A DNA stretch of 64,000 nucleotides from Nageia nagi (taxonomy: Eukaryota; Plantae; Pinophyta), in the NCBI GenBank assembly GCA_050084985.1, contig JBITNC010000001.1, positions 150,598,001-150,662,000 of the forward strand, given 5' to 3'. Made by a program: the position numbers and the translations under genes. This document shows positions 12,917 to 50,998 of the stretch, in pieces. Under the pieces are notes generated by a model. The model did no database searches. It was given only the letters and a program-made list of their open reading frames with translations, and had not been told where the DNA came from. Every line of letters starts with the position of its first letter. Position 1 is the first letter of the stretch.

Positions 12917-13005
12917 GAAAAAGTACAACAGCTGCAATGATTGCGTTTGTGCTGCAAAGCTTAGGATATGATATCACAGCTATAGTAGGAGCAAATGTGC
13001 CGCAA
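12917..13005 (+). CDS. murC: MurC internal exon A (P-loop): (G)KSTTAAMIAFVLQSLGYDITAIVGANVPQ
   Basis: Acceptor tttcAG at 12915-16 and donor GTaata at 13006. The phase-1 start completes the Mur-ligase G-x-H-G-K-S/T-T-T P-loop. The following helix and D.TAIVG match MurC. Confidence 0.9.
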
Positions 13006-13458
13006 GTAATAACCTTGAATCATGATTAGTTTTTGATTGGTTTCTGGAGTATTACATAAAAGTGCGTGATTTTCCTAAATTATTTCATTTTTAAAATTAT
13101 ACAAATTAATATTTTAAAATATAAGATTAAGTAAAATGCTTTTTAGCTGTTAGCAAGCTAATTTCTATGATTATCAACATAGGGAATTCAGTGGAACCCT
13201 TTAGTCTTGGATCCAAACATAACTTTAAACTCTGTATTCTTGTACTTTCTCTTGTTGTTAGCACCCCTTTCAGACTAATACAATGTTTAGACTCTGTTTA
13301 TGTTCCACTTCTTTTAGAGTCATGTTGACTTTTTTTTGTCATCTATGGACATTAATAAAATTTCTTTCCTCCTTTATTTCTTGAAGTGAGGCACTTCTTG
13401 GGGGCTTATTGTTATCTGTGAGTTAGAAGTCTGAGTGGGTAATAGTTTGTATGGCTTC

Positions 13459-14870
13459 TATAGAAACTTAGATTTGCATTTTGGCTATTTAAAATGAGTT
13501 ATTTAGATGTTTTATTTGATCATGTGGAGTGTTAATTTTTGATCCACTTGAGTTACTTTGAAGTAACTTAACTGATATAGCATTATATTAATGCACATAG
13601 TTCTAAATGGGTCCACCTAGGTGAACTCAAAATCAAATTTGTGAATCCTTTAAAGCACTCCCAAGTGCTTATTTTAAAGATGGAAGAGTTGTGAGCAGTC
13701 ATAATCACGATTATCATAAAAAGAGAGCAATCATGCAAGTTTATCTTTTATCATCACGATAATATCATCAAGATTATCCAAGTAATGAAGGGGCAAAGCA
13801 TAGGTTGAACAGGCATCTAGGCCAAAACACCCATGTTTTGACACCCAAACCTAGAATGTCCAACGCTTTTGCACCTAGGCCTAGAATGCTCAATGCTTTA
13901 GCATTGCAAGCCCAAAATACAAACATTCTAATTGTTCGCCAACAAGCTTCCAATCCCGATCATCTAAATAAGTTATTTGTATCTCCTCCAATCAATTTAC
14001 AAAATCCTAGTTGCTAGATTTGTTTACTACATATAGCCATTAATCCAATTTCATTTAGTAGATGTAAATAATTTTATTTGTTTCAATAGATTGATCTTTA
14101 TTTTGTGTCTACGATTTGATGAATCCGATTATTTTTTTGAAAACCTTAGGTGTTCGGTGATAGAAATGATGAACTATGTTTAGCCAAAACCCTAGAATTT
14201 GTCAATACTTTGCTTGGATCCAATGAACCCTACCCAGCTTGAAATCTTTGCCCAAACCCTAGGTTTTTGTTGAGATTAGTATTTTGGAAAAGCTCTTATG
14301 AAAATTACTAAAAAATCTACAAAAGCCTACGTAATCTAAAGCCTTGTTCAAACCTTAGATTTGAAATTAGGGCATCATGGCTTCATATTTATTATTACAA
14401 TAGTCCGAATCTGATCCAACAAATTTTCCTAGAAAATGGTATGGAAGAGGAATATCAACAAGAGGAATATCAAATCCTCTTGCAACACAAATAGAATACT
14501 CTAAACAATAAAAATATACAAAATAATCAAATAGTCAAAATGTTCATTGTCCAACTCTAACAACACAAGTATGATTAGAAACAGTATAATTGAGGAAACT
14601 ATTGGATCATGAAATCTATGAAATTAGTAACAAAAATCTCAACCAAAGTCATCTTTCTTTGGAAATTCAAAATGCTTATCTTTCTCAAGATTACAAAATC
14701 TCCAACTTTTAAAATATTTAATGGAGAAGGATATCTAAGACAATATCTATCATTATTTCAAAAAGAATGTAGTTTGAAATTTGGCTATGATGACAACATA
14801 ATGGCTATATTCTTCTCTATGTGTCTTGAAGGTGAAAGATTTGATTGGTTTTACAAACATTCTCTAGTAT
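13459..14870 (+). mobile_element. Old gypsy 5' fragment: LTR (~13459-14377), PBS-like TGGCTTCA, degenerate gag N-terminus
   Basis: The start is homologous to LTR ends at 34698 and 43246(-). CA|TGG at 14376-14380. ORF 14609..14872 resembles retrotransposon gag (F..F.G.G...YL..F...C...FF...L.G....WF). Confidence 0.6.
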
Positions 14871-17573
14871 GAGGAGCCTGGATTGCGCCACAATTGAGAG
14901 GATCCTAGTTGGCACATTGTCCCACTCCATTCGGAGCAAGAGGATCAACCCATGCCACATCATGTTGGCTAAGTTTGGCTGCCAACAAGTGTTGTCCCTT
15001 GTAGCGTTGGTTTTTTTCCTTTGTCGTCATCACAACCTTGCATCCATTGGAGAAGGCGATCAACTCCCCCTTAGAGCTTTGGCATTGTCGATGGATTTGG
15101 TAGCACAAGGATTTTGCTATGTTGTTATGTAATGTTACATAAAATAATATACTAGAAGCAAAAAAGTAAGCACAAAATGTACACCTGCAGCCCCATGACA
15201 AGTCCACCACTTAATCGGGGTCATGGTGGTCCTCTCCTCCAAAGCTGATATGTCTCCGAATTCCTCCAATTCAGCAGCAAAAGCTGCAAATTCATTTCTC
15301 AATTCAGTTTGTAGAGGAGCTGGAAACAGCCTTTGGAAGGCTTTTTTCACTCCACTTGCCACCTCCTTGTTTTTGTGTGGGGCCTTCCTCTTCCCATTGC
15401 TTTTAGCAATGAGTTCTTCATCATAAAAGTGTGGCGTGAGAGCATGTGCCAACATGTGCAATGGAGTGTTAAATCCATTCCACCTTGTAACAATGATGGT
15501 GCTCACCTGCATCAAATTTTAAAAAATTGTCAACACATTTAAATTTTACATTTTAAATTTTTAAGCAAATATTGATATAATGCATTATTGAAACATTGAT
15601 GGTCATGGACTCACCTGGTTTACAAAATCAAAATCAACAAAGACAAGCATGGGAGCCTCCTATGTGATAATTTCCAGAGTTTTCTCAATCATGGTATCCA
15701 TGTCATCATAAACCTCTCCCAAGAAAGGTTTATCTGTGTCTGCTTTTCAAAGAAGCTCAAATGCAGGTGATGTGAATTTCAGCAAGAAATCCACCTTCAT
15801 CCGCCAATCCTCATCAATCAACACCCTTCGCACCACATTTCCCCTTTCTGAATTTGATTGTCTCCACTCAGCCCATGTAGGACCCATACCATACCTAACA
15901 ATGCTGATTTCACTTGAACTAGCCGCCTCAACATGATGAAGTTTGAGGCATATCTTGTCTCAGCAACTCGAAAAATTGCTTGAGATAGGTGGGTTGCTGA
16001 TAGATTTTATGATATCTCTTGCTTGCCCTATGACCTCCTTAATCCAATAAGTTTTATTCTCTATATCCTCTTAGATCAAATTTAAATTATGGACAAAGCA
16101 AGGAGTTCAAAAAATATGATAATTATGATTGTACCTACTCTCAGCAATCATTCTAGCTGCTTTGCAAACAAGTGCATTATCTGTTATAACTTGCACCACT
16201 CTATTTGGGCCTACTTGCTCAATAACAGCAATTAAAATGTTAGCAATAAAGTTCATGTCTTTTACCTCTCTAGAACAATCTTCAGCTTTCAAAAACATTG
16301 CTCCAGCAGGTGATGATGCAACGACATTGATCAATAGCCTATTTTTATCTAAAATGATAGACACCCCTGAGCTGCTCCATGAGTTTTGAATAGGTTTTAA
16401 AACATCATCAATAAGGTTCTTCTCTTTAGCCAGCAAAGTAGTTCCAACTTTTTCATAGTTTGGCCCTTTAAAACGTCTAGGGGCTGTGTTAATTGCCCTC
16501 ACCATATCTTGCCAGTATGGAGACCGAAGCACATTAAAGGAGATGCCACAAGCATAGAGGGCCCTTGCCACTCTAGTTTCTGCTTCCTCTCTCTCTTGAG
16601 TTTTGAACATTTTCAACAATCTGCTTTCATTTTGTGAATCAGGATTGGCCATCTCATTTTCAGTAGTTGTTGCCCTCTTCCTTGCTTCATGGACAATCCT
16701 TAGCTCAGCACTAGCAACCAAACGAGTATTTGAACTTTGACCAATTTTGCTTCTTTGATCTTTCGACCTTTGAGCATCATCATTGTCACTTTGGAACTTT
16801 GCCCTCACTTTTGTTTTTTTTGTATGTGGATAGCCATTAATCCCCTTTCCTTCCTGCAAAATGTGAGCCTTGACTCTTTTGTAAGAGCCCTTGTAGGGCC
16901 TCACATTTTGACATAGATTGCACCTTCATTCCCATGAACCCCACCAGACTTTTTTTTTTTATCTTAGTCACATACTGCCAAAGGGGATAATATTCTTCCT
17001 GTTTGTTTGATTGAGGTGTTCTTGGGGTTGGAGAGTGACCACTCTCAAAACCAGAAGCCATCTGGCCTTTGCTGTTGGTGGAAGAAAAAAAATAGTAAAA
17101 AACAGTAATAATAGAAGAAAAATATTAAAAAAAATGGCAATATCAGTAAAATACTGAAAACACAGCCCACACCTTTGTTGTTGTTGCCCATAAGTCTATC
17201 CTCTTTGTTGGGAATGCTCCAATGCTTTGTGAGGAATAAATGAATGAAGTGTTTTCTATGTTCTTATAGTTGCTTTTAGGGTTTCATATTTTACTTATTT
17301 TTTATTCTAATGACTTAAAAGTGGTACCCACGAACTTGTATGGAGTAAAAATGCAAAAAAATGTGTCATTTTAACTTGCATTCATCGAAAACGCATTGGA
17401 AACGCCAGTCCAGAATCGGAAATGCGTTTCCAAGTCGGGAAACGTTTTGGAAACTTTTCCGACTTCGCAAACGTCCTGGGAAATGCGTTTCCTCTTGTTT
17501 CGTCCCTGTGTCCGCGTTTCCTCAAGTTTCTGGTACGGGTGCGAGGCTTGGGATAGAGTTTCCTGCAACTTAG
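14870..17573 (-). mobile_element. hAT DNA transposon, left end deleted; pseudogenised intron-containing transposase
   Basis: BED-type GSYKRVKAH, DDE core (ORF 16107..16904), PLHMLAHALTP and WW..HG (ORF 15135..15515). GGAAAC/GTTTCC subterminal repeats at 17380-17565; terminus CCTGCAACTTAG at 17573. Confidence 0.88.
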
Positions 17574-20001
17574 CTCCATAGGCTTGAAAATTAGTGCCTA
17601 ACTTTTGGAGGCACCTTCTTTGGTCAAAATTGAAAAATTCAAAGTTTAAACATTGTTATTTTCTCCTTCACCCAATCAAGTGCAAAGAATCGAATTTTGG
17701 TGGATTTTGGGGCTCTCTTCTTGCATCTACCATTTTTCATTTTTTTGAAGTTTCCAATGGCTTGCAAACCAGTGCCTGACTTTTTGGGGCATTTCTAGTG
17801 CTCAAATTCGAATTTTTGCTAATCTAAACATGCTTAGAATCCCGTTTTCCATGCAACCATGTGAAAAAATTCGAATTTTTGCAAAATTTTTCATTCCTCT
17901 TCATGCTAGGCGCCAATTTTCACCCCTATGGATTTGGAAAATTTGGCAACTAGTGCCTAGGATTTTGGGCCGCTTCCCTTGCTCAATTTCGAAAAAATGC
18001 AAGTTTAAATGTTATTATTTTCATGTTTTCCATGCATTTGACCCCTTAGGTTCGGATTTTGAGGCAAACTTTTGCATATTCTTGTTCCTAGGCGCTAGAT
18101 TTCACTCCATTGGATTTCCAATGGTATGAAAAACTGCGCCTACCTTTTTGGTGCCGTAAAATTGTCCAAAATCCAAATTTTGCAAGTTTAAACGTGCTAG
18201 AATCGAGGTTTTTCACGCAATGAACACCCTAGGATCGATTTTTAATGCATTTTGCACTTATCCCTCCAAGTTAGGTGCTAGAAATCACTCCTATGGATTT
18301 AGAAATATTAGCAAACCTGCACCTAGTATTTGGAGGTCAAAACTTGCTCAATTTCAAATTTTTCAAGGCCTAAATGTGCTAGAAATCACATTTTACACCT
18401 TGTAGACCCCTCAAACTTGAATTTGACCAAACTTTGTTAAATTTTATGATTCTAGGCACTAGATTTCATCCTATTGGATTTCCATAGCCTTGGAAACTTG
18501 CGCCTAGCCTTTAGGATGCCCAAATGTGCTCAAAATTAAAAATTGTGAGACTTAAATGTGTTTGCAATCTTGTTTTCCTTGGTCCCAAGCACTTAAACTT
18601 GATTTTGGTCAAAAAACATTCCATCTTGTCAATCTAGGCGCCATTTTTCATGCCAATGGATTTGGAAAAATCTAGAAACTTGCGCCTAGCGTTTTGGGGG
18701 TCTTTACTTGCTCAAAACCAAAAATTTCGAGACTTAATGTGGCTTAGAACCACCATTTCCACTCATCCATGCATTTAGATTTCATTTATGATGCATTTCC
18801 ACTTTTCCACTACTATCTAGGCACCAAAATGCATCTCTATGGATTTCCCATAGGCTTGAAAAACTGTGCCTAGTCTTTGATTGTCATAGACTTGGTTAAA
18901 CTCGTAAATTTCAAGTCTTAATTGTGATAGAATTCACCTTATCTCTCCAAATACACTCTTAGACTCGAATTCCGATACCATTTGCATTTATCTTTGAGAA
19001 ACGTGCACCATTTTTCCCTTGGGTTTTCAACACCTTGGGAAAATGTGCTTGTGGCTAAGGGTACTCAAACTTACACTTTCGATCCATTTCGAACTCAATT
19101 TGTGCATTTCCGGCCACTCCCGGTGTTTCCGAGCTCAAACTCGATCAAAACGCCCTATTTGGCACATTCAAGTTCAAACTTTGCATTTTTTGATGATTTC
19201 TGAGGTCAAACGATGCAAAAATGACCATTCCCGCCTTTCCAGGCTCAAAGTTGTCATTTCTCGTCATTTCCAGCATTTTCGGGCTCAAAGTATTCAATTT
19301 CGCCCAATTTTAGCATTTCCAAGTCCTTAGTGTGAAAAAAACTACCTTTTCCGGTATTTCCGACATTTTCGAGCATTTCTAGCCATTCTGGGCTCAACTC
19401 ATCGCTTTTGGTCATTTTCGAGCTTTCCGGACTCAAATTGTGAAAAAACGCACATTCACCATACTTACCATTTTCGGGCTCAAATGTGACCAAAACATGC
19501 CTTTCTACCTTACTTGCCCTTTTCCAGCTCTTCGGGGTCAACTTTGACAAAAACCTCAATTTATGCTATCCTTGTCATTTTCAAGGTACCCGGACTTGAA
19601 ACTGACAAAAAATGCACATTTTTACACCTATGCACCTATGAGCTCTGCAAAAATGTGCTTTTTCTATCAACTTGACACTCTTACATTGAAATGCTTCAAA
19701 AACGCGCCTTTTTCCGCTCTGTTGGCCACTTGGTGAAAAACTCCCTTCTTGGTCGCTGCCATGATCCAAAATTGCATCCTGCTTGATGTTGTTTGAAATT
19801 GGGCCATGAATGGCCGCTGGACACGCCGAATTGCCTTGGTGCCTCTGGAGGTACTTTTGTGCACTGCTTCATCACTTGGCCATTCTGACTCTGCATTCTG
19901 GTCGTCGTTTAGTCATCTTCAAGCAATGTTGTCCATTGCCTTCAAAAAAAAATTGGGTGCCCAAAATGCTGCATCTTAGGGTGTGTTGTGCGGGCACAAC
20001 A
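17574..20001 (-). mobile_element. U3 portion of a long LTR (hairpin-array family, copy 2)
   Basis: About eight ~182-bp units (17595-18870), then a ~40-bp repeat zone, then terminal TGTTGTGCGGGCACAACA at 19984-20001. Confidence 0.85.
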
Positions 20002-23000
20002 CCTCCCAAGTACCCAACGTGGGGTGTCTCATCTCTCTGAAGCTCCTCGTATGATGGTAAGCCTTCTTCCAAATGCTCAACGTGGGATTTCTAGCTCTCT
20101 TTGAGTCTAACGTGGGATGTCCAACCTCCTCAAGGCTCAACGTCAATGGGATCAAGCTTCTTGGTATCTAGCTTTAGGTGGAAATCCTCTCTAAGTTTCA
20201 ACGTGGGATGCTAGACTTCCCCAAACCCCAACGTAGCCCTTCCAAGCTCCTCGGGCTACAATGTGAGGCACAAAACCTCACTCCTTTTGACACCATTTGA
20301 TCACCTCTAGCCTCTTATTGTCCACCTGTGGACAATCATCTCTAATCCCCTCCAGGGTGTGAGTCTTCCCATTGATTTCGAAATTCATAGTGAGTTTTTG
20401 ATAGTTGGTGTGGATATCCCCTAGGTCAAACAACCATTGTACTCCCAAGATGATGTGAGGATGTCCCTTCAAGGGATAAATGTAGAAATCTTCTCTCATT
20501 GTACAACTCTGCAATCTCACACCAAACCCCTCAATGATGTGGTCTACCAATGTGAGCTTCCCTTTGGCGTTGGAAACCCTAAATCCCTCAAACCCCTTAG
20601 TCTTAGGTTCTTCTTAGCAAAGCTTGCATCAATGAAGTTGTGGGACGCTCCTGGATCAATCAAAACCATCACATCTTGTCCTCCTGATTGCACCACAATC
20701 TTCAATGTAAGATACTTCTTTACCCAATGCAGTGAAGCGGTCATGCTCCTTAATGTGCCCTTAGCCCGAGGTGATACCTGATCTAGGGTGTCTACCCCAA
20801 TCTCCAAATCTAAATCATCTGACTCATCCTCCGAAAACACCTCAATGTAATGCACCTTTCCTTTACCTTGATAATGGTGCCTTGGCTCCCAAGTCTTCTT
20901 GCAGTAGAAGCATTTGCCCTCTTCTAGCAGTTTCCTCTATGTGGCTGCATCTAGCTCGTTCGTTCTAAGCGGAGGGATGGGTTTTGCCTTGCTGGCCCCT
21001 TCCTTGTCAACAAACGGCTTTCGGGTGGCTGGCCCTCTATACGTCTTCACTCCCTCAAGGGATTTCACCATGGGCTGAAGGTCATATGCTACTGAGATTG
21101 TGTCATCAAGGCTCCTAGGAGAGGATACCTTGACCATCCCTTGCAATGGCTCCATCGAACCCTCAATGAAGAGGAATGTTAACCTCTCTTTAGGAATATG
21201 GTGAATCATGATGACAATTCTCTAAAACTCTACCACATAATCATCCATTGCTCCTTGTTGTCTTAGTGTTGTTAGATCCTGGAAGTAATCATTTTCTTTC
21301 TTCCGATCGAACCGCTTGACCAACCGTCTGGCGAACTGATCAAAAGAGGTGATGAGAGAATACTCTTGGCTGATCACCCCATGTTGCCACCACTCCAAGG
21401 CATCTTCCTCAAAATGCAATGATGCGAAATGAATCGCATCCTCCTCCACCATGTTAGGGCTTAGGGTGAAATAGGTTTGCAATTGATGTAACCATGCCCT
21501 AGCCATCATCTTCTTCCCATCGAACATTTGTACTTGCATTTTATTGATTTTGTGCTGCAGGTCCTTCTCATCCCATAAATTGCTGGAAGTGTGTGGCCCA
21601 TGCGGATTGCTTCCCTTCAACCCCAAAAGCTATAGGTAGCCGTTGAAATTGACGTCTCTCATCAACCCTAGATCCAACATAGAATAATCCTTGAGAATCT
21701 GACTCAATTCCAATGGGCGAGGAACTTGACTCTTCGGCTCCTCGTTGACCTTCTTTGAGAACATAGGCTTGGACGGTTTTTGGGATAACAAGCTACTCCT
21801 CCATCCTACCAATGTCCTCCTCTAGGTACCTTCTTAGGAGAGGGTTTGTACGCCAGGTGCTCGGTGTGAGTGGGACCTCCCCATCGACCCATGGTGGGTT
21901 GATTCCCAATCCCTCAAACTCTAATATCTCCTCATGCTCAGCTTGCGATTTGTGCAATCCTCCTCAAATAACTCCTCTTTGTGATATTTGGTATGATGTG
22001 GGGTCTCTTTGTCATCCCTAGTGTGATGTGGGCCCTCTTTGTCATCCTTGGTGTAGCGTGAGGCCTCTTTGTCATCCCTGGTGTGATGTGGGGCGGTATT
22101 CTGCCTCTCCAGCTCCTCTCGAATACCCAGATGCTGGTCCAATTGCCACTTCATAGTTGTGACCATCCCAATCATGTTGTGAATGGCTGAAATGAGTTCG
22201 TCAAACTTCCGTTTAGGGGTTGATTCCCGAACCGGAGTTGTACTTCTCCTCCTGGCAGCTCTCCGTCTCTTTCTTTGTGTTTCCCCTTCATCCTTGAATG
22301 TACCCTCATTTGACACTTCGTCCATCCATGGTCTTCTATCCTCCTCATGGGCGGCGGCTCCTCCATGTGTGATCTTTTGATTTTCCTGGCGGATGCCATC
22401 TCTCTGCGAGTGTTGGATCTAGTGTAGTAATGGTGTACTCTGGGTCTCATGCACGGTTGGCCAAATCCAAGCTTTGATACAACTTATGATGATCCAAAAT
22501 TCAAATTAGAAGCAAATGAGCAAATTCAAACCAACAAACCCTGACGTCAAGCCTAAGGCATCAAACACAAGCACGTAAACCGTCAAGATGGCAATGTTAG
22601 GGTTAGGGCATCCAAACCAAGCTATCACAATGCAAATAAGCCAACGTTTGATCTAGGGTTACAATATCAAGCATTTACAACATCCAATCACCAACATTTA
22701 GCCAGAACATGCAATAAACAATAGACAATAAACAATGCTCCACAATGCCAACGTCTAGCCAATGCAAGTATACACAACAATAGTAACCCAACTCATGCAC
22801 AAGAATGATGTAGACAATACAAAATACGAGATCCAATGCCCTTGGCACTATATGGAATGTACAATGCTCAACAAATACAATACTAGGCCCATAAGGGTTG
22901 ACGATGGCCTCCAAGGAGCCAACTAGGGCATAACAATATATCTTCTCACAATTGGAACAGCCTTGGAACCATGGGACAATACGCTCCCTTAGAATGAGAA

Positions 23001-23785
23001 TCCTCTCCTCCAATGGAGCCCTCCTCAAACTTTGGATAACCATTGAAGGTAGAAGCAATACCTCGGAATACCACCAGATGGGCAAAGGTGCTACACCAGT
23101 GTCGTAGACAGACAAGATCCTTCAACCTAAATGCCCTCTAGACACTGTGCCTAGGAATGTTGCTTAGCACCGCTAAGACTTGCTATCCTCTGGACGATAT
23201 AAAAGTAATAGTAATTTTGTATATTTAGTAATGAGACTCCAAGGGTTGATATAGCCTTCCTTGGTTCGAATTACACCTCAATGTCATCACCCAATCCCCT
23301 CATGGCCCAACGTTGGCATCTAGGGATCAATCCAAGCTCAACGTGGGTGTTTGGGCCTCCCCTATGCTCCACGTGGACCTAGGAATGCATGCATGGGCCT
23401 AGCAAGCATGCGTGGGCACCTAGGGGGGCAAAGTGGGTCTCAAGGCCCAACATGGGGGTCTAGAAGCCTCCCCTGAGCTGGCCCAGGTGTCTAAATGCTC
23501 CCAATCCCAACGTTGGGGCGCTTCAGTGCTCATCTATCCATACAATGCTAAATAGACCTTGGGATTCTCACAATCATGTTTCGGGATCTCCAAGTATGAC
23601 AATGACACCTAATCTAACCTTAGGAGGGAGACGTCCCACTTGAGGCTCACAGTGGGGTCCATTGACCCATTAAGTTTCCTATCCTAAGTTACAAATATGA
23701 AGGTACAATGCATAAACAAAGTATATTACAAGAGGAACCTTTCAGACCCCACAACTAATTACAATTGGACAAGGGGGACATCACA
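20002..23785 (-). mobile_element. Ty3/gypsy 5' part: LTR 22485-23785, tRNA-Met-like PBS, gag, protease; no RT follows
   Basis: On the minus strand the LTR begins TGTGATGTCCCC and the PBS reads TTGTATCAAAGC (22471-22482). gag lies in ORFs 21222..21626 and 20937..21209; protease LIDPGASHNFID in ORF 20544..20855. Confidence 0.85.
21970..22095 (-). repeat. 30-bp (10-aa) coding tandem repeat x4 in the gag N-terminal region
   Basis: PHHTRDDKEA-SRYTKDDKEG-PHHTRDDKET-PHHTKYHKEE in ORF 21921..22325. Confidence 0.85.
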
Positions 23786-23789
23786 ATAT

Positions 23790-37889: not shown

Positions 37890-39289
37890 AAGGTCAAAAT
37901 CACCATGGGAGAATATAATTTACAGAGTGACATGTATGGGCTTCCATTGGGGGAATTTGATGTGGTCCTTGGAGCTCAATGGTTGCGGACATTGGATCTA
38001 TATTATGGGATTTTTCTGATTTATTGATGCATTTCACAGTTGACAGATAGAAATATACCCTCAAGGGAGTACACTCAGGCCCCTCATAGATAATTAGTTC
38101 ACACAATATGGAGAAGCTTCTTTGGAAGGGAGTAAAAGGGATGGTTGCATAATTATTTTCACTCCAACCAATCGAGAAGGTACTACTTTTCTTGGAAGTC
38201 AACCACCAAAGATTCAACCTTATCTCTATCCTTGTTTGTTGAAGAATGAAATTGAGAAATTGGGTCATGAAATGTTGGAAGTGGAAATTATTTGACCCAG
38301 TGTAAGTCCTAACTCTTCCCCAATTTTGTTCGTTTGAAAAAGGGATGGGTCATGGTGTATGCGCATCGAATTTCAAGCTCTCAAAAAATCGCAATAAAGG
38401 ATAACTTTCCCATTCTTGTCATTGATGAACTACATAGGGCTCAATACCTTTCCAAACTGGATCTGTTGTCATAGTATCATCAAATTAGGCTTCTACAAGA
38501 AATATTTCTAAAACAACTTTTCGCACACATGAAGGCCACTATGAATTTTTGGTAATGCCATTTGGTCTTTACCAATGCTTCTTCCACTTTTCAAAGTTTG
38601 ATGAATTAGGTATTTCATCCTTACTTTAAAAAATTTATTTTGGTTTTTGTTGATGATGTTTTGATCTATTGCAAGAAGTGGGAGGACCATTTGGCCCACT
38701 TAGATTAGACCTTACAAATTCTCCAAGACAACGAATTATATGCCAAGTGTTCAAAATGTTCTTTTGGGTGGGGAAAGATTAAGTATCTAGGGTACATTTT
38801 TTCAAAAGAGGGCATCAAATTAAATCCTTACAAAATTGTAGATATAAAGGGTTCACTTCGATTATGGAAAGATTGTAGCTCCATTAATATCCTTAGTAAA
38901 AAGGAATGCTTTTATTTGGTCGCCCATTGTTGAAGAATCTTTTCATAGATTGAAGGACGCTGTGTTCTACTATAGTTTTGGCCGTGCTTGATTTTTCTAG
39001 AACCTTTATCATTGAGAGTGATGCTTGAGAAGTTGGAATTGGAGCAATCTTGATGCAAAAAGATAGACCCGAGGCTTTTACTAGCAAGGCATTATTGGGA
39101 AGAAACTTGGCAAAATCCACATATGAGAAAGAAATGCTAGCAATCATTCATGCTATTCAATGATGATGGCCATATCTCATTGGTTGACATTTTCTTGTTC
39201 GTACAAATCATCATAGTCCGAAGCATTTTATGGAACAACGAATCTCCACTCCTGAGCAACAAAAGTGGGTTACTATGTTGTTGGGGTAT

Positions 39290-41300
39290 GCGGTGAGCAA
39301 GGTGTTGTCATTGTTGTTAGCACACTCAATTTGACTTGATTGGCGCAATGGTAAGTTTTTGGAGCTTGTACAAAGATGTTTGATACTTATAAGGATGTGT
39401 TCAATGTTCGGGTGAAGGTGTTGCAAGTTGTTTGTGCAAAATTGGCAAAATTGTAAACATTGTGAAAAAGTTGCAAACGTTATTAGAAAGTTGTTCGGAG
39501 CCTATTTGGAGATGTTCGATGCTTGTGTGGATGTGTTCGGTGCTTGGGTGAAGTTGTTGCAGGCTGTTATTGAAAAATTTCAAAAGTTGTCAAAACATTG
39601 CAAAAGTTGTTGGAATGTTGCAAATGTTTCTCAAACGTGCCATTGGACTGTGTTTGATAGCCCGACACATTGTTTGGAGCCTTGTTTGACAGTAGTGAGT
39701 GCAGTCTCAATGTTGGTGCAGCGTTGGACGAAAGACAGTACAATGTTGGACTGCTCGACAACTTTGTTGGACAGGTGCAAAATCTGCATCGGAGGCCACT
39801 TTGTTGGAGGTATATTAAGCAATTCGTGAGGAGTTAGACTTTGAAATTTTTACTGGAGGTAGACAGATCAATCAAGATGATATGTTTCATATTTCAGCTC
39901 AAACGGAGATCTGAGGAGGAAATAGTGGTTATTGCAAAACGGCTCCATAGCACTTTTTCGAGTTTTGGCTTGTGAACTGTTTGACGAAATGCCTTTTTCA
40001 GAATTTCAATGTGAAGTTGCCCAGGTATGGCAGAGCGAATTGTTTGACAAATTGCCTCATGGAAAGGCAACAATGAAATGAAGCAAACCGGTAGAGAAGA
40101 CACACAAATTGTTTGATAAAATGCATCGTCCATTTGCAGCAATGATGTATATACAGGGAGGCAGGCAATTTGTTTGACAATATGTTTCAGTTTATTAGCA
40201 GCTCCGTATGCCCAGAATTGATATGTGAATTGCTTAACAAAATACCTCATTCTTTTTGAAAAAGCAACGTGGTACATGGGTGATGACTTGGAATATAAAT
40301 AATTAAAAACTCCTTTTTATACAATAGGGTGGCTCAACGTTTAAAATAGCTGTTTTCTTAAGTTTTGTCAGGCGTTACATTTTGGTATATTGTGGCGTTG
40401 AGAGCACTGTCCTTTTAGAGGTTGATGACATTAAAAATTGAAAGTTTTTTTTTTTTAATTGTATGCTTTGAAAAATACATACAAAAACAGGGCAGACTGG
40501 CGTGACAAATGCAAGGGGCGAATGAAAAACAAATAAAATAACCAATGTTAATAAAAGATGCAGTTTTGAAAAAGCGAATATCTCCAGCTAGTTAGCGGAT
40601 GCCTGATCAATGATACAAATAAAAATTATGTCTACCTTTTGGAAAAACTTGCGCTCCATACAAAGGTAACTCAGCTTCTATTAGAAAAATATTCAGCAAT
40701 TAAGAAGGGCAGAGCTCCTGTGATTGATTGTATTCTTTTAAAGGCTGTGAAAATCAAAACTAAGAAAAATGTGGCAAAAACTTATAACGAAAAACAGTTT
40801 TTAGAAGACAGAAAATATGAAAAGGAAATGTGTGTGAAAAATGCTAGTTCTTGGAATTGAAAATGCACAAATAGGGAATATGAAACGCTGCCAGAGTAAC
40901 AATATATGCTGTGGAGTTACAAAACAATGAATTGGCGAAGATGAAACACTCTCGTGTTCAGAATAGGTGTTGAAAGTCAGTTTTGAAGAACACATTATTG
41001 ATACTACCGAACCGATAACCGTAAGCTCCAAGAAGACCTATCAGTTTTAAACCTAGCAGTTGTGTTGTGTTGAGGAAGGGATAAATAGACAGAATTTCAA
41101 TGATACAGTTTAACAGGGGTATTGAAAAGAGTATAGAGTGAGACACCTAATTGTGTATGAGACCGAGCAGTGTGTGTGACCCTAAGTGGTCTAGCTCGCA
41201 AAACTTCTCTTTTGAATACCTCTATCAGACCCTAAGTGGTCTAGCTCACAAATCTTCTCTGCTGAATAGCTCGCAAAACTTCTCTTTTGAAAAACTTGCA
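39290..41300. mobile_element. LTR-like non-coding insert replacing the RH-INT linker; contains the PPR-fragment array
   Basis: Pol homology stops at ~39290 and resumes at ~41300. Internal direct repeats (39370-39640 and 41178-41290) and TATAAATA at ~40294. Confidence 0.55.
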
Positions 41301-42949
41301 AAAGGATGGCTAGTTCTTTTTATTGGGTTGGAATGAAATATGATATCAAGAACTTTGTTGTAGAATGTGATGTTTGTCAACGACACAAAGGTGAGACTGT
41401 AGGTACTCTAGGATTACTTCAGCCTCTTCCCATACTAATGCAAACTTGGACTGATATTTTGATGATTTCATCGAGGGCCTTCCGAAGTATTAATGGAAAT
41501 ATATTATCATGGTGGTGCTGGATAGGATGTCAAAGTACATGCAATTTTTCTCCCTAGATCACCCATACGAGGTTGTCAATGTGATTCAACTTTTCCTTGA
41601 TAACCTTTTCAATCTCCACGGTATGCCCTCCATCATAGTCAATGATCAAGACCTTGCTTTTACCAACAATTTTTGGCGAGAATTCTTCAAGCTTTAAGGA
41701 ACTTGGCTCAATGTGAGTTCAATCTATCAACTCCAAATTGATGGCCAAATAGAAAATGTTAATAAGTGCTTGAAGACTTATTTGCATTGTTTTGCTTTTG
41801 CCCAACTTGTTCATTGGGTTAAATGGCTTCCTTTGGCAGAATGGTGTTATAATACTTTGTATCATAGTGCAATTAAGATGAGCCACTATGCATCAGTGTA
41901 TGGTCAAGCACCACCCATAGTGGCCTATTATGTTCTTGGTAGCACCAATGTTCAAGCAGTTGACACTTAATTAACCACTCAGGGGGATATCCTACACCTT
42001 CTTCAGGAGAATTTGCAGATTGCTCAACATCGTATGAAACAACAGGTTGATAAATAACGAATCAAACTCGAATTTTAGGAAGGGGACATGGTTTTCTTGC
42101 AGCTTCAACCATATCGCCAAAAATCTTTTAAGATAAAGGGACCCTAGAAGTTAGCTCTAAAGTTTTATGGGCTTTACAAAATTCTCCAATGCATTGGACC
42201 CATAGCATACAAGTTGGAGTTACCTGTATCCTCAAAAGTTCATCCAATATTTCATATTTCTTTTTCTCAAGAAGGTATTGGGTTCATAGGTAAAGTTTTA
42301 GACACAATTGCATGAATTCATAGAAGATGGCTTCATAATGATTGAACCTAAAGTGGTTTTGGAATGATGCACCCATTCGCTTCCTAATCACACCATTATT
42401 GAAGTTAATATTGAGTGGTGCATATTGGCACCTGAGGATGCGACTTGGGATGCACTTCATCAACTTCAACAACAATTTCCCCAATTTTTGCATTGAGGAC
42501 AAACTTCTTTTCCAAAAGGGGTGGCATATTAGGATCTCATATCGTAACATTTACTTATTCTAGTAGTTTATTTAATTATTGGCTTGTAATGTGGATCGTC
42601 ATACTTTTGTAAGGTGAATTGCCATTTTGTAATGAACCGCTAATTAGGGTTAGGATAACATGACTATAAATATATGTAAGAGGGGTAAAAATATCATCTT
42701 GGAGAATATTTGTCTTTTGAGTTGTAAGGAGGAAACCCCCTCAAAGCAAATTGTGATTCATATTGCTATTCATGCTATCTTAGTGTTATTCTAAATTGCA
42801 TTACTTGAATATATATATATGCTCTATTGCACTACAAATCTGTTGTTATTCCATATTTTCTTGCTATTTCAGCTCCCTTTTATATCTTCTAGATTCTTAA
42901 CAATTTGATTCAAGGAAATATTGAAGAATGTGATTGATCTTGCATAAGA

Positions 42950-43246
42950 GGCTAGCATTAGGGCATTGGAAGATGTTGGAGCATTACAACTTTGCATCCA
43001 AAATTTCAAGTTTTCAAAATCCTATGAGATAATGAAATGAGCTTTTGGTTTATATAGAATTTGGAAATCTAATATGGGATTCACCTAGATGGAGCTGTCT
43101 AGGATGATATTTACATAAGATAATATCAAATTAGATAATTTTACTTTAAGTTTGAATAGTCCAAAGTGCTATTTTTAAATAACTCAAGTAAATCACTTAA
43201 ATAAAGTCATTTTAAATTAGTTAAAATGCAATTGTAAGTGTTTACA
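42950..43246 (-). mobile_element. LTR-end fragment, inverted relative to the 34698 and 13459 copies
   Basis: The reverse complement begins TGTAAACACTTACAATTGCATTTTAA and aligns with 34698-34930. Confidence 0.7.
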
Positions 43247-43321
43247 ATACCGCATTTTATGAGCTACTCAAGAGAATGATTTTCATTGTACTCTTCCTGG
43301 GCTCTCATTGTGTCTTTACAG

Positions 43322-43417
43322 GCAGATGAGTATAAGGAATGCTTTTTAGGGATTTCTCCATCTTTGGCTATAATTACTAACATAGAGTGGGAGCATGTTG
43401 ATGTTTTTCAAGATGAG
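43322..43417 (+). CDS. murC: MurC internal exon C: ADEYKECFLGISPSLAIITNIEWEHVDVFQDE
   Basis: ttacAG acceptor and GTaaga donor; 96 nt. Carries the (E)ADE motif and the P..A..TNIE.(D/E)H.D motif typical of MurC. Confidence 0.93.
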
Positions 43418-43523
43418 GTAAGATGTTTTCACTCTTCATAAGTTATGCTGAGGTTTGTAATGTATCTGGTATTCGTCTGTAGTATAATGTCTTTCTGTTA
43501 TTAATTTCTTGATTTTCTAGCAG

Positions 43524-43600
43524 GCTGAAGTAAGGGAAGTTTTTAGAAAGTTTGTTATGCAAATCAAGCGAGGTGGAGTATTTATTGCTTGTGGTGACAG
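43524..43600 (+). CDS. murC: MurC internal exon D: AEVREVFRKFVMQIKRGGVFIACGD(S)
   Basis: Follows a 106-nt intron. Tandem acceptor TAG-CAG (43518-43523), donor GTgaat at 43601; ends in phase 2. Confidence 0.88.
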
Positions 43601-43780
43601 GTGAATCATCGAACCCCTCGTTTCATAACTCATAAATTATGTATGGATGAATGCAATAGTAAAACCCAGGTGATTTGTATTACATTTGTTTGAAGGATTA
43701 ACTGATCAACCATATGTTCAATGTTTTAAGGTAAAATTGAAAGATGTTAAGAAGCTAAAACTATTTTTCTACATCACATT

Positions 43781-44230
43781 TGAAAGAAAGAAGATTATAT
43801 GAAATAATATAAACACAACTTTTCTACAGTCTGGTGTTATACACACACATACACCCCTGTCTAATTTCCCCAGGATTAAATTATTGGGAAATTGTATGTT
43901 AGTAGCAAAATTCAGCAAGTTTTTAAAATACTTGCTGTTTATGGGTCTGAGTGGGCCTTGCCAAGCTGCTCAGGCACAAGTTGACAAGTTGTTATGAAAT
44001 AATATAAAATTATATGAAAGAAAGAAGATTATATGAAATAATATAAACACAACTTTTCTACAGTCTGGTGTTATACACACACATACACCCCTGTCTAATT
44101 TCCCCAGGATTAAATTATTGGGAAATTGTATGTTAGTAGCAAAATTCAGCAAGTTTTTAAAATACTTGCTGTTTATGGGTCTGAGTGGGCCATGCCAAGC
44201 TGCTCAGGCTCAAGTTGACAAGTTGTTATG
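43781..44230. repeat. Recent 216-bp tandem duplication with an 18-bp filler
   Basis: 43781-43996 and 44015-44230 differ at 2 positions by eye. Confidence 0.95.
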
Positions 44231-44814
44231 GGATTGCTGGTTTATTCTCTTACTCTAAAGTTTTCCCGAGTTAAAAAACTTTTTTGCCAAGTTGGTGAAA
44301 TACAGGAAATAGTTTCGAAACTTGCAGCTTTTTGATATTGTATACAAATCTCTAAATTGAGTCTAGTTGAATGCTTGTAGTCATCTGAACTACAAACATA
44401 TACATATGTTGATTTGGACTGAAATATTTTGCAGATTAACTTGACCACTTTTGATGTGGGTAAATATGGATTATTTTTCTCCTTAATATACTTAATCCTG
44501 ACCTATATAAATGTCTATTTCACTTTTAGAAATACAAATCTCAAGTGATCCAAGTTATTATTTAAGCAACAGTGCAAGTTTCTCAGAGCAATGATATTCA
44601 TTTGTTTACAGATAGTAGCATTTTTTTATTTTGACCAATGCCATGAAACATACATGATATCTATGAAACTTATGGGAAAAAGTTGGAATCCTGAAAGTCA
44701 AAATTATACATTTACTCGAGTTATAATGTTTTTTAAAATTATCACTTTTGAAAGTGGTAGCAAAATTATTTGAAGCATTTGGAGTGAAAACTCTAAAAAG
44801 CATTTGGTTTGCAG

Positions 44815-45010
44815 TCCAGGTGTGTGTTCCTTGTTAGAAGAAATACAACCAAAGTGGAGGGAATCTTGTGGGTTTACAAGAGACACCTCTGCACAGTGGG
44901 TGAGATTTGACTCTAGTTGTCACATAATCACGTACGGACAAGGGGAAAACAATGATTGGCGTGCTGTCTCTCTTACACCCAATGCAAATGGTGGTACAGA
45001 TTATGTAGTG
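44815..45010 (+). CDS. murC: MurC internal exon E: (S)PGVCSLLEE...HIITYGQGENNDWRAVSLTPNANGGTDYVV
   Basis: ttgcAG acceptor and GTacgt donor; phase 2 in, phase 0 out. Contains the TYG....D motif of Mur ligases and lies within ORF 44804..45085. Confidence 0.88.
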
Positions 45011-45462
45011 GTACGTTTATCTATTGCTAGTTTAATTATTTTTACTTTTAAATTTATCAATAAAATATTTCCTGGCTTTAACTAGCAATTTAATGGTCCT
45101 CTTTTAAATATATAATCTTTTCCATCTAATTTTTAAATAATCAAGAGAAGAAGTGAACATCCTTGATGTTATTTTCAAAACAGCAATGTGTCTAGAAACT
45201 TGCATAGTAGAGCTTGAGGGAACAAGTAATCAATCTTATATGTGACTGGTAGGGTTCAACAGAATATTGGAGTTATTATCAGGTCATGGAAGGGAGCTAC
45301 TAATTTTATTTGAAGATTCAGGATCCTAGGGAGCCTTTTTCCCATTAGGCTCAATATTTAGAACCTCTCAAACTTCAAAGTTCAAACAGAGAGTTTTCCT
45401 TAGCTGGGATGGGAGCTCTGTTACTTGATGTTTTTGACCTTTTTTGAAACCAAGGGTTTCAA

Positions 45463-48400
45463 TGTAATGTACCTTTCTAGGGTTTATCCATTTCAGCATT
45501 CAATTCCGCTTTCATTCACAAATTAGGGCATCAATCAACATGCTCATTAATCATACAAAACATGCATTCAAGCTGAATTATAACAGCGGTAGCCAAATCT
45601 GATATAAAACACTCATAACATGTGAACATGACCAAAACTAGGGCACAAATCAGATCTGTTACATAACAGAAATATAGCTCCAAAAGTACTCAATTCGCAT
45701 ACATTCCCATGCCCAAAGAAGATAGTAGCATAGCAGAAATATATAGGAACAATCATTAACATTTGAGATACAATATGAGAGCCAAGGCCCAAAATCATCA
45801 ATAATCAATAAAGAATAAATGTAGGGCTGTAACAAGCTTGTAACAAATTCTAGGGCAAAGCCCAAGACTCCAAAATGCTCAAATTGGACTCCTCAAGGTT
45901 GGCACAAGTCCCAAGGCAGCTCTCAAGCTTGGCGCTAGTCTCAAGATGACTCTTAATGGTTGGCGCAAGCTCCCAAATGGCAAGATAGATAGGTGCAAGC
46001 TCTCGAAGAGGTGTATAAGTGTAGATGAGCCACTTCTAGGCTAGGGAGTGGCCCTAAGCCCTAGAATGTAGAGAAGGGAAACATCCCTAAACTCCGAATG
46101 ATCCAAGATCGAATGCACAAGATGATGCTTTCAAGTGATCACTTTCCTTGCTTATGTAGATGTCCAAACTTGCAATTAGTGTCTCCCAAGGGCAGCTGAC
46201 TAGGCGGGCAGAATATAACATCATTAAGTGGCCCATAAACCCCCACGTTGGGTGTAGAGGCCCAAAATCATATTAAAATAGCTCTATTATAAATTTATCT
46301 CATCGTCCCTTATGGAATGCTCCCCAAGGGAGTACAAATATCGTTAAATACGTGAAATAAATTACTAAACTCCTACACTAATGATCAAAGTGAATAAGAT
46401 GAATATGGGGACATTACAAGTCCACCCTCCCTAAATTGCTTGCTCTCAAGCAATTCAAGGATGCATGCTCTCAAATGTGATCTCCTTCCCATGTAGCATC
46501 TTCAATTGGAAGTCCTTTCCACTTAATCAAATGCTCTTTGATGATCTTGTTCCTTAGTTTCCTTTCCCTCATTTCCAAGATAGTCTTTGGTTCCAAAATC
46601 AGCTTTCCTTCATCATCCAAAGGTGGCAACTCCATGGAAGGAGTATTGTGCTGTCCTAGTGCCTTTTTGAGGCATGAGACATGGAAGACATTATGGATCT
46701 TAATGCTGTTCGGTAACTTGAGTTCATAAGCAACATTTCCTATCTTCTTTGTGATTGGATATGGGCCATAAAACCGTGGTTTGAGTTTCTCCTTTCCATT
46801 CTTTTTCAAGGTGGACTGCTTGTGAGATTGTAATTTAACATAAACCATGTCTCCTACTTCAAAGTGCCTCTCAACTCTTCACTGGTTTTTATACTTTTTC
46901 TGATGTTCTTATGCTAATTGAATTTTGTTTTTTAGTGACTTCATGATGTCTTGGCTTTCTTGTACAAAATGTTGAGCTTTGGGTACACGGTTGTCATCAA
47001 TAAGCAAATCCATGAAAATTGGGGCATCATAACCATCTAATGCTTTGAATGGTGTCATCTTGATAGAGAGATGATGTGTTGTATTGTAACAAAACTCCCC
47101 TAAGTGCAACCAATTTATCCATGCTTTCTGCTGCTCTGAAACATAGTTTCTCAAATACTCCTCTATCCATTTGTTTACAATCTCTGTATGGCCATCAATT
47201 TTAGGGTGACAGCTTGTACTTGGGGTCAAAATAGTCCCACATAATCTTAATAATTCTTGGCAAAACATACTCATGAATAGGTTGTCCTTATCACTTATGA
47301 TGTTATGTGGTAACTGATAAAGTCTAAATATCTCTTTAAAAAATAACTCGGCGATTTGGGTAGCAGTGAAGGAGACTGAAATAGCAAAGAAATGAGCATA
47401 CTTTGTTAATTGATCTACTACCACATAATTGCAATCTTTTCCTTGTACCTTGGGATGCTGGATATGAAATCCATAAATATGCTTTCCCATTTTCGTTGTG
47501 GAGTGGGTAGGGGCTGAAGTAACTCGACTGGGAACACCTTTTCACCCTTGTTTTCTTGGCAAATGGCACACTCCTTGATGTGCTTAAGAATGTCATGCTT
47601 CATTCCTTTCCAAATGAAGTTTTCACGCAGTTGTTTGTAAGTCTTCATGTACCTTGGATGTCCTACTATAGGTGCGTCATACATGGCTGAAATTAACTTC
47701 ACTTTTACTCTGTATCTGAGGGAATAAAAATTCTGTTTTTACCAAAAACCAGTCCTTCTTTAATGCTGAACCTGTCATCATTTTGGCGTCCATCCAAGAG
47801 GCGGGATGTAAAATCATTCTTTGCATATTCGGTCATAACTTCTTCTTTCCAGTTGTTGATTAGAGTGGAAAGTGAGTAGAATGTGGGCACTCTTGAAAGT
47901 GCATCTGCTGCTGAGTTCCTTTTCCCCTTAATGAATTCAATATCAAAGTCATACGTTTGTAGCTTTCTCACCCACTTTTGCTGCCATCATTCAAATTTTG
48001 TTGTCCCAAGAAATGTTGTAAACTGTTGTGGTCTGTTCAGACTATGAATTTTCCACACACAAGATATTGTTGAAACTTATCCAAAGCATGCATGATAGCT
48101 AGCATTTCTTTATCATAAATGCAAAGTTTCTTTCTTGAGGTTTCAATTTTCGGCTTTCAAATGCTATGGGTTGCCTCTTTTACATGAGTACGACTCCTAT
48201 TCCCATGCCTGATGCATCACAATCAATGGTAAAAGGTGATGAGAAATCCGGTAGTACAAGCAGAGGAAAAGTGGTCATTACCTCCTTCAACTTCTCAAAA
48301 GACTTTTGGGTATCTTTGTTCCATATAAATACTCCTTTTTTTTCATTCCATCAAATAATCACTTAGGAAAACCATGCAATGAAAGTTTTCTAAGATGGAT

Positions 48401-50300
48401 GAGAAATTGACTTTGCTAGGGTTTGGGAGAATGAGTTCCAAAAGGATATTCTTTCATCATACTGCTGCAAGGTTTGGTTTTGATTTTGGCAGTAAGGAAA
48501 GTTCAGGCAAGGGTGGGGGACTAGGCTTGGTGGTAGATTGCTCCAATGGTGGGGGGGGTCTGTTGAGAGCTAAAGATGCTCTTTTGGAGAGGAGGTTTGC
48601 AGTGTGACTAATCCTTTGAGGAGCACTCTCATGATGGATCTTTTTATTTTTCCTTTATCCCTAGTGTTCGATGGTAAGGATTTTGCTCCAAAGGATGGCG
48701 TTCCTACCTCTCTCTATGGTACTTTCTGTAAGAAGGATATCGATTTTTGGTGCATGATTTATTCAATTCTTATGGTATCCCTGATCCTATCATGGTTGGT
48801 TATGATTACAACTTAGCTTCCCTTGATCCATTTGTATACGATGGAGGGAGGATGTTCTTAGATATTTCAAGGTCAGAGGAAAGGGATCTTGCAGCTTAGG
48901 AGGTGGAATTTGTGGGTGAACCTAAAGGGATCACAAAGGATGCTTGGTTGGTTAAATGATATATCTCAATGCTAGTTCCCTGCAACTTGGTTGCAGGTTT
49001 TCCCACAATGTTGGGAATTATTGAGAAGGTGGGTGACGTCTTGGATGAAAATGATATTACTGAGGTCATCATGGATCTGCTATGTTACCGATCTGGTTAT
49101 GTAGGGATGGTCTGACTATTGATTTTTGTAGGCCTATTATTTCTCTTTCATAGGATGATATCATTATTGCTTTGGGTGTAGAGGCTAGCCTTCAAGGTTG
49201 GTTCTCTAGCATAGGGTAGGCTTTAAATTTGTTAAGGCGCGTATCACTGACCTCGACCCATTAAGATTTGGTTAGTGCTCTAATGCTTCTTCCTATGAGG
49301 GATATGGTCTATTTTGAGGTGTCGCTTGGGTTGCAATATGCATGATGGGTCTCGTGGATTGATCAAGATCTTGAAGGGCTCTTGTAGGAGCTTGGTGATC
49401 CTTTATTTCCTTGGGCGAGGTTGTGCTCATCCTTGTCGAAGGTGTTATCTCCTCAAGGCCTCTCATTGTCATTCGGATATACTTTCCTTTCCTTCTGGGA
49501 TGTAGTCCTCAAAGGAAATATATTTTTCTGAGTGTGCTAGTTTTTTCTTCTTTTGGGTATATCTAGTTAGAAGAGGGTCTGCATTGAAAGGGTCCTCTCT
49601 TCTTTGCCCTTCTTTAGGGGAGGATTTTATGGGGATTTTTTTAAATATGTTTTTTTATGATAATTATTCCATGCTTCGAACTTTTTTTGTTCACAAATTC
49701 TAGGTTGAGGGACTCTATCTATAAGGATTTTTTATGCCCTAGTTAGGTTGAGGGATAGTTTCGAAGCTTCTTTCTGAATCAAATATGAATATGGGCTTTT
49801 TGTTAACTCTGTGAGAGGAGCGGTCAAGGCTGAAAACCCTTTGATGAATCTTCTATAATATGTACATAGTCCCAAGAATCCCCTCAAATGGGTGAGGATG
49901 GTTGGTGTAGGCCAATCCTGAATTGTTTTGATCTTCTCTTGATCCACTTGGACTCCTTTGTAACTGATGATGTGACCCAAGTATAATATTTCGGTCATCC
50001 CAAATTCACATTTGGACTCTTTTGCATAGAATTCTTGTTCTTCCAAAATGCTCATACTATGTCAAGGTGTTTTTGGTGATCTTCCCATGACTTGCTATAT
50101 ATAAAGATGTCACCTAAAAGGCATTACCAAAAATTCAAAGTGACCATAGTGACATCTAAAAGCTGTTTTGTGAACATCTTCTTCTCTAATCCTTATTTGG
50201 TGATATCCGGATCGTAGGTGAATTTTGGAGAAGTACTTGGCTTCATGTAACTCATCAAAAAGCTCATCAACACTAGGTATTGGATATCTATTTTTGATGG
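45463..50300 (-). mobile_element. 5'-truncated chromovirus: RT-RH-INT-chromodomain, PPT, 3' LTR 45463-46418
   Basis: LTR TGTAATGTACC...GGGACATTACA; PPT GGGAGGGTGGACT (46419-46431, minus). Chromodomain LIKWKGLPIEDATWE (ORF 46471..46848), INT 46909-47702, RT 49732-50300. Confidence 0.92.
48341..49795 (-). mobile_element. Retroposed-type insertion at the RT/RH junction of the chromovirus
   Basis: Host codons LTK|KGVF are interrupted. CTTTTT occurs on both sides (48335-40, 49796-801) with an extended T-run at the left end. No RT or endonuclease recognised. Confidence 0.55.
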
Positions 50301-50923
50301 TAGAAAAGAGCAGCAAATATAATCTCAGCAGTAGAAAAGATCTTTCTAAACCTTTTTAATGAAATATCTGAAGAAGACCATCTCTGATAGACTTAAGTCT
50401 TTAAAATCAGCATTGGCAACGAGAGAAAATGGAAAAATAATTAGAAACTTTAGGTTTTACATTTCTTTTCTTCTGCAAATTTAATGATGGAATAGAGTGG
50501 AGATATGGTTCAGCTGTACGTGAGGTTTGTTGTAGGAGATGTTTTTTTTCTTCACTTTGTGGGGTACCTGGCTGTTCAGAATTACCTGAAAATATTGACA
50601 TCTTTCTGAAACTACATGAATGTTTCTGGGGCAGCAGAAATGTCCAAGAATTTAGAAGCATTTCAGAAATGTTTCCAGGCAGTTTTCACTATATAGAACA
50701 CTTGAAATGGTAAATGAGTATACTTTAGACAGTTTGGTTCATTGCGGAGTTTATGTAATGTTATTATTTCTTTCAACCGTAACGTGTACATACTTTCTTT
50801 TTCAATCCAGACATCGACTGTTGGAGTGGTGAAAAAATATTAATTGTTGTATAGCTTCTGTTCTTTATGTTTATGATAGTAATTTACTGTTGCATTTTAT
50901 TTAGTTGATTGTGTGGTTTCTAG

Positions 50924-50998
50924 TTGCATGCAGGAATACCCATGTCAAAAATAAGCTTGAAATTAGCAGGAGCTCATAATGTTATGAATTCTTTGGCG
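50924..50998 (+). CDS. murC: MurC internal exon F: LHAGIPMSKISLKLAGAHNVMNSLA
   Basis: ttctAG acceptor and GTatgt donor; 75 nt. Contains the G.HN..N.LA adenine-binding motif of Mur ligases. Confidence 0.9.

Follow-up and report, generated by a model that had tools for sequence, protein, structure and literature searches.

Does the genome of Nageia nagi hold a live gene for MurC (UDP-N-acetylmuramate:L-alanine ligase), and, if it does, what would such an enzyme be doing in a seed plant? We addressed this question in a window of 64,000 nucleotides (nt), positions 150,598,001 to 150,662,000 of the forward strand of contig JBITNC010000001.1 (assembly GCA_050084985.1), in which an earlier note had proposed an intact, intron-split MurC; all coordinates below are positions within this window. 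The best explanation for what we found is a live nuclear gene of the plant MurC type, whose product would, by homology, be an enzyme of plastid peptidoglycan-precursor synthesis, and we put the probability of this reading at roughly 0.82. Six exons lie in the window, and transcripts from four independent studies join most of them exactly as the gene model predicts.

Exon-intron structure of the MurC locus

Exons were detected by a six-frame motif scan followed by a tblastn search of the window with MurC proteins of plants, the reference proteins having been found by a protein search with the third exon (E3) and by two homologue searches. With the plant proteins we saw six colinear matches and no other match worth noting. 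Inspection of each boundary at single-base resolution gave six exons, all on the plus strand, that total 587 nt and, together with one base from an upstream exon, make 196 codons without a stop. All acceptors are AG, preceded by a pyrimidine-rich tract, and all donors are GT, with spliceosomal GT-AG ends, a feature of plant nuclear-encoded plastid MurC, at all ten exon boundaries, and the exon phases chain correctly (1 to 0, 0 to 0, 0 to 0, 0 to 2, 2 to 0 and 0 to 0). The earlier note had the six exons, their coordinates, the length of about 196 amino acids (aa), the GT-AG ends, the matching phases and the lack of a stop all correct.

The first exon, E1 (12917-13005, 89 nt; acceptor tttcag/GA, donor CAA/gtaata), starts in phase 1 with a P-loop glycine codon split G/GA. 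It holds the P-loop (G)KSTT and the following helix, aligned to Escherichia coli MurC residues 130-157, and is 83-90% identical to gymnosperm sequences by tblastn with plant MurCs. An in-frame upstream extension of E1, suggested by a loose likeness to the preceding MurC residues, was rejected because it would delete part of the P-loop and because the stretch has the look of a polypyrimidine tract, rich in AT and with CAG at its end. E2 (32309-32362, 54 nt, 18 aa; acceptor tgtag/TTC, donor GAG/gtgatc) ends in FVLE, giving the Glu of the E/ADE motif (E. coli E174), and 17 of its 18 residues are the same as in the nearest full-length relative, P0072 (E 2e-6, tblastn). E3 (43322-43417, 96 nt, 32 aa; acceptor ttacag/GCA, donor GAG/gtaaga) carries ADEY...TNIEWEHVD, including the His aligned with E. 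coli H199.

Close behind it, E4 (43524-43600, 77 nt; acceptor tagcag/GCT, donor CAG/gtgaat) ends in phase 2, with 2 nt of a codon, and is 85% identical to P0072 by tblastn; it is preceded by a tandem tagcag acceptor, of which transcripts use the second AG. The first T of E5 (44815-45010, 196 nt; acceptor tgcag/T, donor GTG/gtacgt) completes that codon as a Ser AGT. Compared with E. coli MurC, E5 has about 23 extra aa, an insertion specific to plants; it also encodes the NDWRA...GGTDY stretch and is 75% identical to P0072 (E 8e-28, tblastn). E6 (50924-50998, 75 nt, 25 aa; acceptor ttctag/TTG, donor GCG/gtatgt), 88% identical to P0072 by tblastn, encodes GAHNVMNSLA, aligned with E. coli G290, H292, N293 and N296, and the end of the middle domain.

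The introns differ greatly in length. Intron 1 (13006-32308) spans 19,303 nt and is full of transposable-element fragments, intron 2 (32363-43321) spans 10,959 nt, intron 3 (43418-43523) only 106 nt, intron 4 (43601-44814) 1,214 nt, and intron 5 (45011-50923), which holds fragmentary retrotransposon-like open reading frames (ORFs) on the minus strand, 5,913 nt. The flanking introns are at least 12.9 kb long on the 5' side and at least 13.0 kb on the 3' side. Among the six exons, ORFs of at least 60 aa cover only E1 and E5, in agreement with the earlier note's remark that the ORF track shows just two of them.

The exons encode the middle domain of a plant-type MurC

Judged by sequence comparison, the six exons are the ATP-binding Mur ligase middle domain of a plant-type MurC. 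P0072 is the 567-aa product of a 1.9-kb transcript assembly; the exons align without gaps to its residues 182-378, with 83% identity, and the Pfam model Mur_ligase_M matches it at residues 177-381, the same span. The exons are also colinear with the MurC of Taxus and Cryptomeria. Single-exon E-values against P0072 range from 2e-6 to 8e-28 in tblastn, and with all matches colinear and gap-free the agreement lies far beyond chance.

The exons belong to MurC, as opposed to Mpl, MurD, MurE or MurF. P0072 scores 387.5 bits on the murC model TIGR01082, passing its cut-off of 335.1, and 171 bits on the mpl model TIGR01081, failing its cut-off of 388.7. Among NCBIfam models, E1 alone scores 22.1 bits on murC (7e-5) versus 11.6 bits on mpl (0.1), and E3 alone scores 29.5 bits on murC (3.9e-7) with no mpl match. 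When the four E. coli ligases were compared with the window by tblastn, only MurC gave a significant match (E 8e-5), and MurD, MurE and MurF gave noise only. The closest solved structures to P0072 (14 matches) are nearly all MurC, the weakest being an Mpl, and its matches to bacterial MurC chains have E-values of 1e-51 to 1e-71. The raw ORFs that hold E1 and E5 had no significant match among PDB sequences or in Pfam, because the exons are short and padded with translated intron; all comparisons treated the exons singly or searched the window with reference proteins by tblastn.

Pairwise identity over the exons falls in the order of plant phylogeny, from 83% with P0072 through 75% with Taxus chinensis, 72% with Cryptomeria japonica and 70-73% with two further transcript products, to 55-57% with moss and lycophyte sequences and near 50% with angiosperms (about 50% with Vitis), and the closest relatives are all plant MurCs. 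At 83% identity, the window and P0072 are about as similar as Taxus and Cryptomeria are to each other (82%), and the distance from the window to the conifers is about the distance between conifer families. By these identity distances the window gene comes from a gymnosperm whose lineage is not among the conifer families that the databases name. A protein-collection search with P0072 for this plant's own full-length protein returned nothing closer than P0072 itself.

Catalytic motifs and conserved columns are kept

All of the motifs listed in the earlier note (GKSTT, EADE, TNIE.EH.D and G.HN..N) were seen on the plus strand. The six-frame motif scan placed the P-loop (G)KSTT at 12916-12930, in agreement with the family pattern G-x-x-G-K-(T/S)-T, the first Gly of the loop being expected in an upstream exon outside the window. 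The E/ADE motif spans the E2/E3 junction, TNIEWEHVD lies at 43376-43402 and GAHNVMN at 50969-50989. The residues aligned to E. coli K130, E174, H199, G290, H292, N293 and N296 are all conserved; going by MurC structures, these would have metal, acyl-phosphate and catalytic roles.

For a broader view of constraint, we aligned 124 plant MurCs with E. coli MurC and added the six exon peptides as separate fragments. With conservation of at least 95% as the threshold there are 38 columns, of which the exons keep 36; with at least 80% there are 80, of which they keep 73. The two exceptions in the stricter set are a Leu to Ile change and an Asp to Lys change in ADEYK, the latter common to P0072, Taxus and Cryptomeria. 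Differences from P0072 avoid the conserved columns, falling in 1 of 38 of them versus 32 of 156 other columns (Fisher p 0.007).

The locus is transcribed and spliced

The MurC locus is a live, transcribed gene. We looked up a 2-kb stretch with E3-E5 in public sequencing runs and aligned the contigs of four runs, which represent one organism and four independent studies, with one matching contig per run. The best-matching runs contain about 12% of the sampled words of the stretch, and words wholly inside the three exons make up about 14%, so that the figure is roughly as expected of runs that contain the exons only.

The four contigs (2073, 2051, 1978 and 1357 nt) show no mismatch to the window and share the same structure. 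All four join E3 to E4 (43417 to 43524) and E4 to E5 (43600 to 44815), and the skipped pieces, introns 3 and 4, begin with GT and end with AG. In all four, the overhang before E3 is the 3' end of E2 (32331-32360) and the overhang after 45010 is the start of E6 (50924-50953), both sequences being unique in the window. The contigs thus confirm four of the five junctions in the gene model that the earlier note had put forward (E2/E3, E3/E4, E4/E5 and E5/E6, including the tag acceptor of E6), with E1/E2 remaining a prediction. The runs are probably RNA, judging by the exact removal of introns and by their make-up of 140,000-280,000 contigs with a total of 33-64 Mb.

The longest contig (2073 nt) has the start of E3 near position 778 and the last base of E5 at 1146; about 775 nt precede E3 and about 927 nt follow E5. 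If the protein has the length of P0072, a contig of 2073 nt has room for the absent coding parts plus untranslated regions (UTRs) of about 90 and 280 nt.

Extent of the gene within the window

The N-terminal domain PF01225 and the C-terminal domain PF02875 (DDYAHHP) are not encoded in the window. Two weak matches to other parts of MurC were considered and rejected. The first, at 61106-61231, is order-consistent and resembles the RRFEF..G..DVY region, but it is a low-complexity repeat with about 41% identity, versus about 83% in the real exons, and lacks exon-like boundaries. The second, at 20959-21033, resembles the N-terminal GIGG motif but has the wrong order, coming after E1, and lies inside a retrotransposon gag region.

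The description of this MurC as intact is therefore accurate for the middle domain and does not extend to the N- and C-terminal exons, which were not found in the window; the intactness of the whole gene would be suggested by the transcript length of about 2 kb.

Proposed function and alternative explanations

Going by its family, the locus would encode a nuclear MurC that is imported into plastids. The exons for its N-terminal transit peptide, its UDP-N-acetylmuramate (UDP-MurNAc)-binding domain and its C-terminal domain, which would bind the amino acid, would lie beyond the window. The middle domain would bind ATP and Mg2+, and the carboxylate of UDP-MurNAc would be activated as an acyl phosphate; attack on this acyl phosphate by L-Ala would then complete the reaction with which, in plastids, the peptide part of the peptidoglycan precursor begins. 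It is reasonable to suppose, as had been proposed for this locus, that the plant may have either a working or a repurposed plastid pathway. The more far-reaching idea, that MurC in this gymnosperm lineage outside the conifers studied so far is part of a complete working plastid peptidoglycan pathway, and that the peptidoglycan layer is ancestral and retained across most gymnosperm lineages, seems to us possible at somewhat less than even odds.

Several points weigh against a live MurC with this function. About 35% of the coding sequence lies in the window (196 of about 567 residues), and tblastn, even at very lax thresholds, found no exon in 1-12916 or 50999-64000 that would encode the N-terminal or the C-terminal residues (roughly 181 and 189, respectively). 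The contig alignment spanned the E3-E5 stretch only, so the acceptor of E1, like the E1/E2 junction, is a prediction, and the RNA nature of the runs is a guess in their labels ('RNA?'). Constraint was gauged through column conservation only. Finally, angiosperm MurE is a case of a Mur ligase retained for a role other than peptidoglycan synthesis.

This last point leads to the alternative that survives best, though we consider it unlikely: an expressed protein of the MurC fold that has been repurposed as a structural or regulatory plastid protein, like angiosperm MurE in the transcription complex of the plastid-encoded RNA polymerase (PEP), and makes no peptidoglycan precursors. Repurposing has precedents in angiosperm and Larix MurE (PMC12681378), and many angiosperms keep MurC without a bifunctional PBP (penicillin-binding protein). 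The middle domain of the window gene has nevertheless kept all of its ATP- and Mg-binding motifs, Picea and Thuja keep the full set of Mur genes, and the MurE of Picea abies, PaMurE, is catalytically conventional (PMC12681378; bioRxiv 10.1101/2023.05.02.539068).

It is less probable still, and in our judgement quite improbable, that the locus is a transcribed pseudogene, truncated or disrupted in N- or C-terminal exons beyond the window. Such a reading would sit well with the lack of flanking exons within the window and with the failure of this plant's full-length protein to turn up in the protein collection. Against it, the contigs of about 2.0-2.07 kb fit a coding sequence of 567 aa plus short UTRs, the transcript was assembled in four studies and must be stable, and the 196 codons run free of stops and frameshifts, with canonical splice sites throughout and the conserved columns kept.

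We see almost no chance that the exons belong to another Mur-family ligase (Mpl, MurD, MurE, MurF or a FolC-like protein), or stem from bacterial contamination or recent transfer: the P-loop and G.HN..N-type motifs are common to all Mur ligases and the raw ORF searches of Pfam and PDB were blank, but single exons match murC best, E. coli MurD, MurE and MurF give noise where MurC reaches E 8e-5, the spliceosomal introns of up to 19 kb are filled with plant transposable elements, and identity tracks plant phylogeny (70-83% with gymnosperms, about 50% with angiosperms).

Comparison with known plant and bacterial MurC

MurC is no rarity in seed plants, and the earlier note's framing of the gene as unusual there was overstated: our two homologue searches found MurC annotated by name in Cryptomeria, Taxus and more than 100 angiosperms, among them Vitis, Solanum, Theobroma, Prunus, Citrus, Musa and Phoenix, and full sets of Mur genes have been published. 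Full Mur toolkits have been described in Thuja, Asparagus and Citrus (MacLeod et al., bioRxiv 10.1101/2023.05.02.539068), and Picea abies yielded Mur cDNAs for the complete set, with the genes expressed there and PaMurE plastid-targeted and active (Sugita et al., 2025, PMC12681378). The assemblies of Pinus lambertiana and Abies alba yielded all of the genes except MurC (PMC12681378), which fits such genes being easily missed in giant genomes. The plant Mur-gene literature that we examined made no mention of non-conifer lineages such as Ginkgo or cycads. The gene call is sound but no surprise, and it opens no new question: Mur genes in gymnosperms and some angiosperms are already published, as is enzymology for the MurE of Picea abies.

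What the locus adds, for one step of plastid peptidoglycan synthesis, is a gene model with good support in a giant genome, where small exons such as the 54-nt E2, set between introns of 19 kb and 11 kb, are easily lost in annotation. It also adds one more gymnosperm lineage that still transcribes MurC, a point relevant to the question of whether the plastids of seed plants have kept their layer of peptidoglycan.

The nearest known systems are the other gymnosperm MurCs (Cryptomeria japonica LOC131051716, Taxus chinensis KI387_036182 and the Picea abies cDNA; PMC12681378), which belong to the same family and have a colinear middle domain. Those of Taxus and Cryptomeria share with the window gene both the ADEYKE variant and the plant-specific insertion in E5, with 72-75% identity over the 194 residues compared. 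The window gene differs from them in lineage, being 83% identical to P0072 but only 70-75% identical to conifer sequences. The MurC of the moss Physcomitrium patens is likewise nuclear and intron-bearing and falls in the same plant clade, with about 55% identity in this domain; the moss pathway and its role in plastid division are experimentally supported (PMC9434261), whereas the window gene is known from gene and mRNA alone.

In angiosperms, MurC-like genes (for example those of Vitis, Citrus, Solanum, Theobroma and Musa) carry the annotation UDP-N-acetylmuramate--L-alanine ligase and show the same three-domain make-up in Pfam, but they are only about 50% identical to the window exons and occur in plants without a bifunctional PBP (PMC12681378). 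Bacterial MurC (E. coli, PDB 2f00; Haemophilus influenzae, PDB 1gqq and 1p3d) has the same fold and catalytic motifs. Unlike the bacterial genes, the window gene is nuclear, with very long introns and about 23 aa inserted into the middle domain, and in its relative P0072 the Mur ligase domain is preceded by a Ser-rich stretch of about 66 aa at the N terminus, presumably a transit peptide. Plant MurC does not group with cyanobacterial sequences (Berckx et al., 2020, PMC7231273).

Two database models of plant MurC, Cryptomeria japonica LOC131051716 isoform X2 (P0061) and Sphagnum fallax BDL97_05G088700 (P0008), pass directly from ...VPQ to ADEY... and so do without the 18 residues of E2, including the Glu of E-ADE. 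In such models, either the in-frame 54-nt exon is skipped or a micro-exon was missed by annotation; E2 is present in all four transcripts of the window's organism. A separate 100-aa plant product (P0001) contains two tandem copies of an E3-like peptide, one decayed and one good, which suggests an exon-3 duplication or a pseudo-exon in the MurC locus of another plant.

Transposable elements and repeats around the exons

The introns and flanks hold ORFs derived from transposable elements that are short and fragmentary, with Pfam matches to Ty3/gypsy rve, RVT_1 and gag and to the hAT-like DUF659. The description of the surrounding elements as decayed fits these ORFs. Pieces of Ty3/gypsy integrase, reverse transcriptase and gag were found by ORF and Pfam searches at 395-2501 and 21222-21626. 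The longest such ORFs of the window lie on the minus strand within 395-5715, in the intron upstream of E1, and include a 340-aa integrase ORF (rve plus an H2C2 zinc domain) and a 130-aa piece of Ty3/gypsy reverse transcriptase.

Intron 1 contains, besides short minus-strand ORFs that match Ty3 gag, several decayed copies of a hAT-like transposase with DUF659 on the minus strand at 16107-16904 and 29102-29593 (Pfam E 8e-26 and 5e-30), along with similar pieces at about 24220-24423 and 24950-25165, also on the minus strand, opposite to the gene. Two minus-strand ORFs in intron 5 (46909-47490 and 49732-50055) have no Pfam match.

A low-complexity repeat family occurs at 17360-18400, 30356-30810 and 61000-61300, with overlapping translations on both strands and recurring peptides of the 'FPKR/GNAF/FGKF' type; its copy at the last of these positions accounts for the spurious weak MurC match at 61106-61231. 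In intron 4, positions 43778-44230 hold a 234-nt tandem duplication whose two copies, each at least 219 nt long, are 99% identical, making it recent relative to the rest of the intron.

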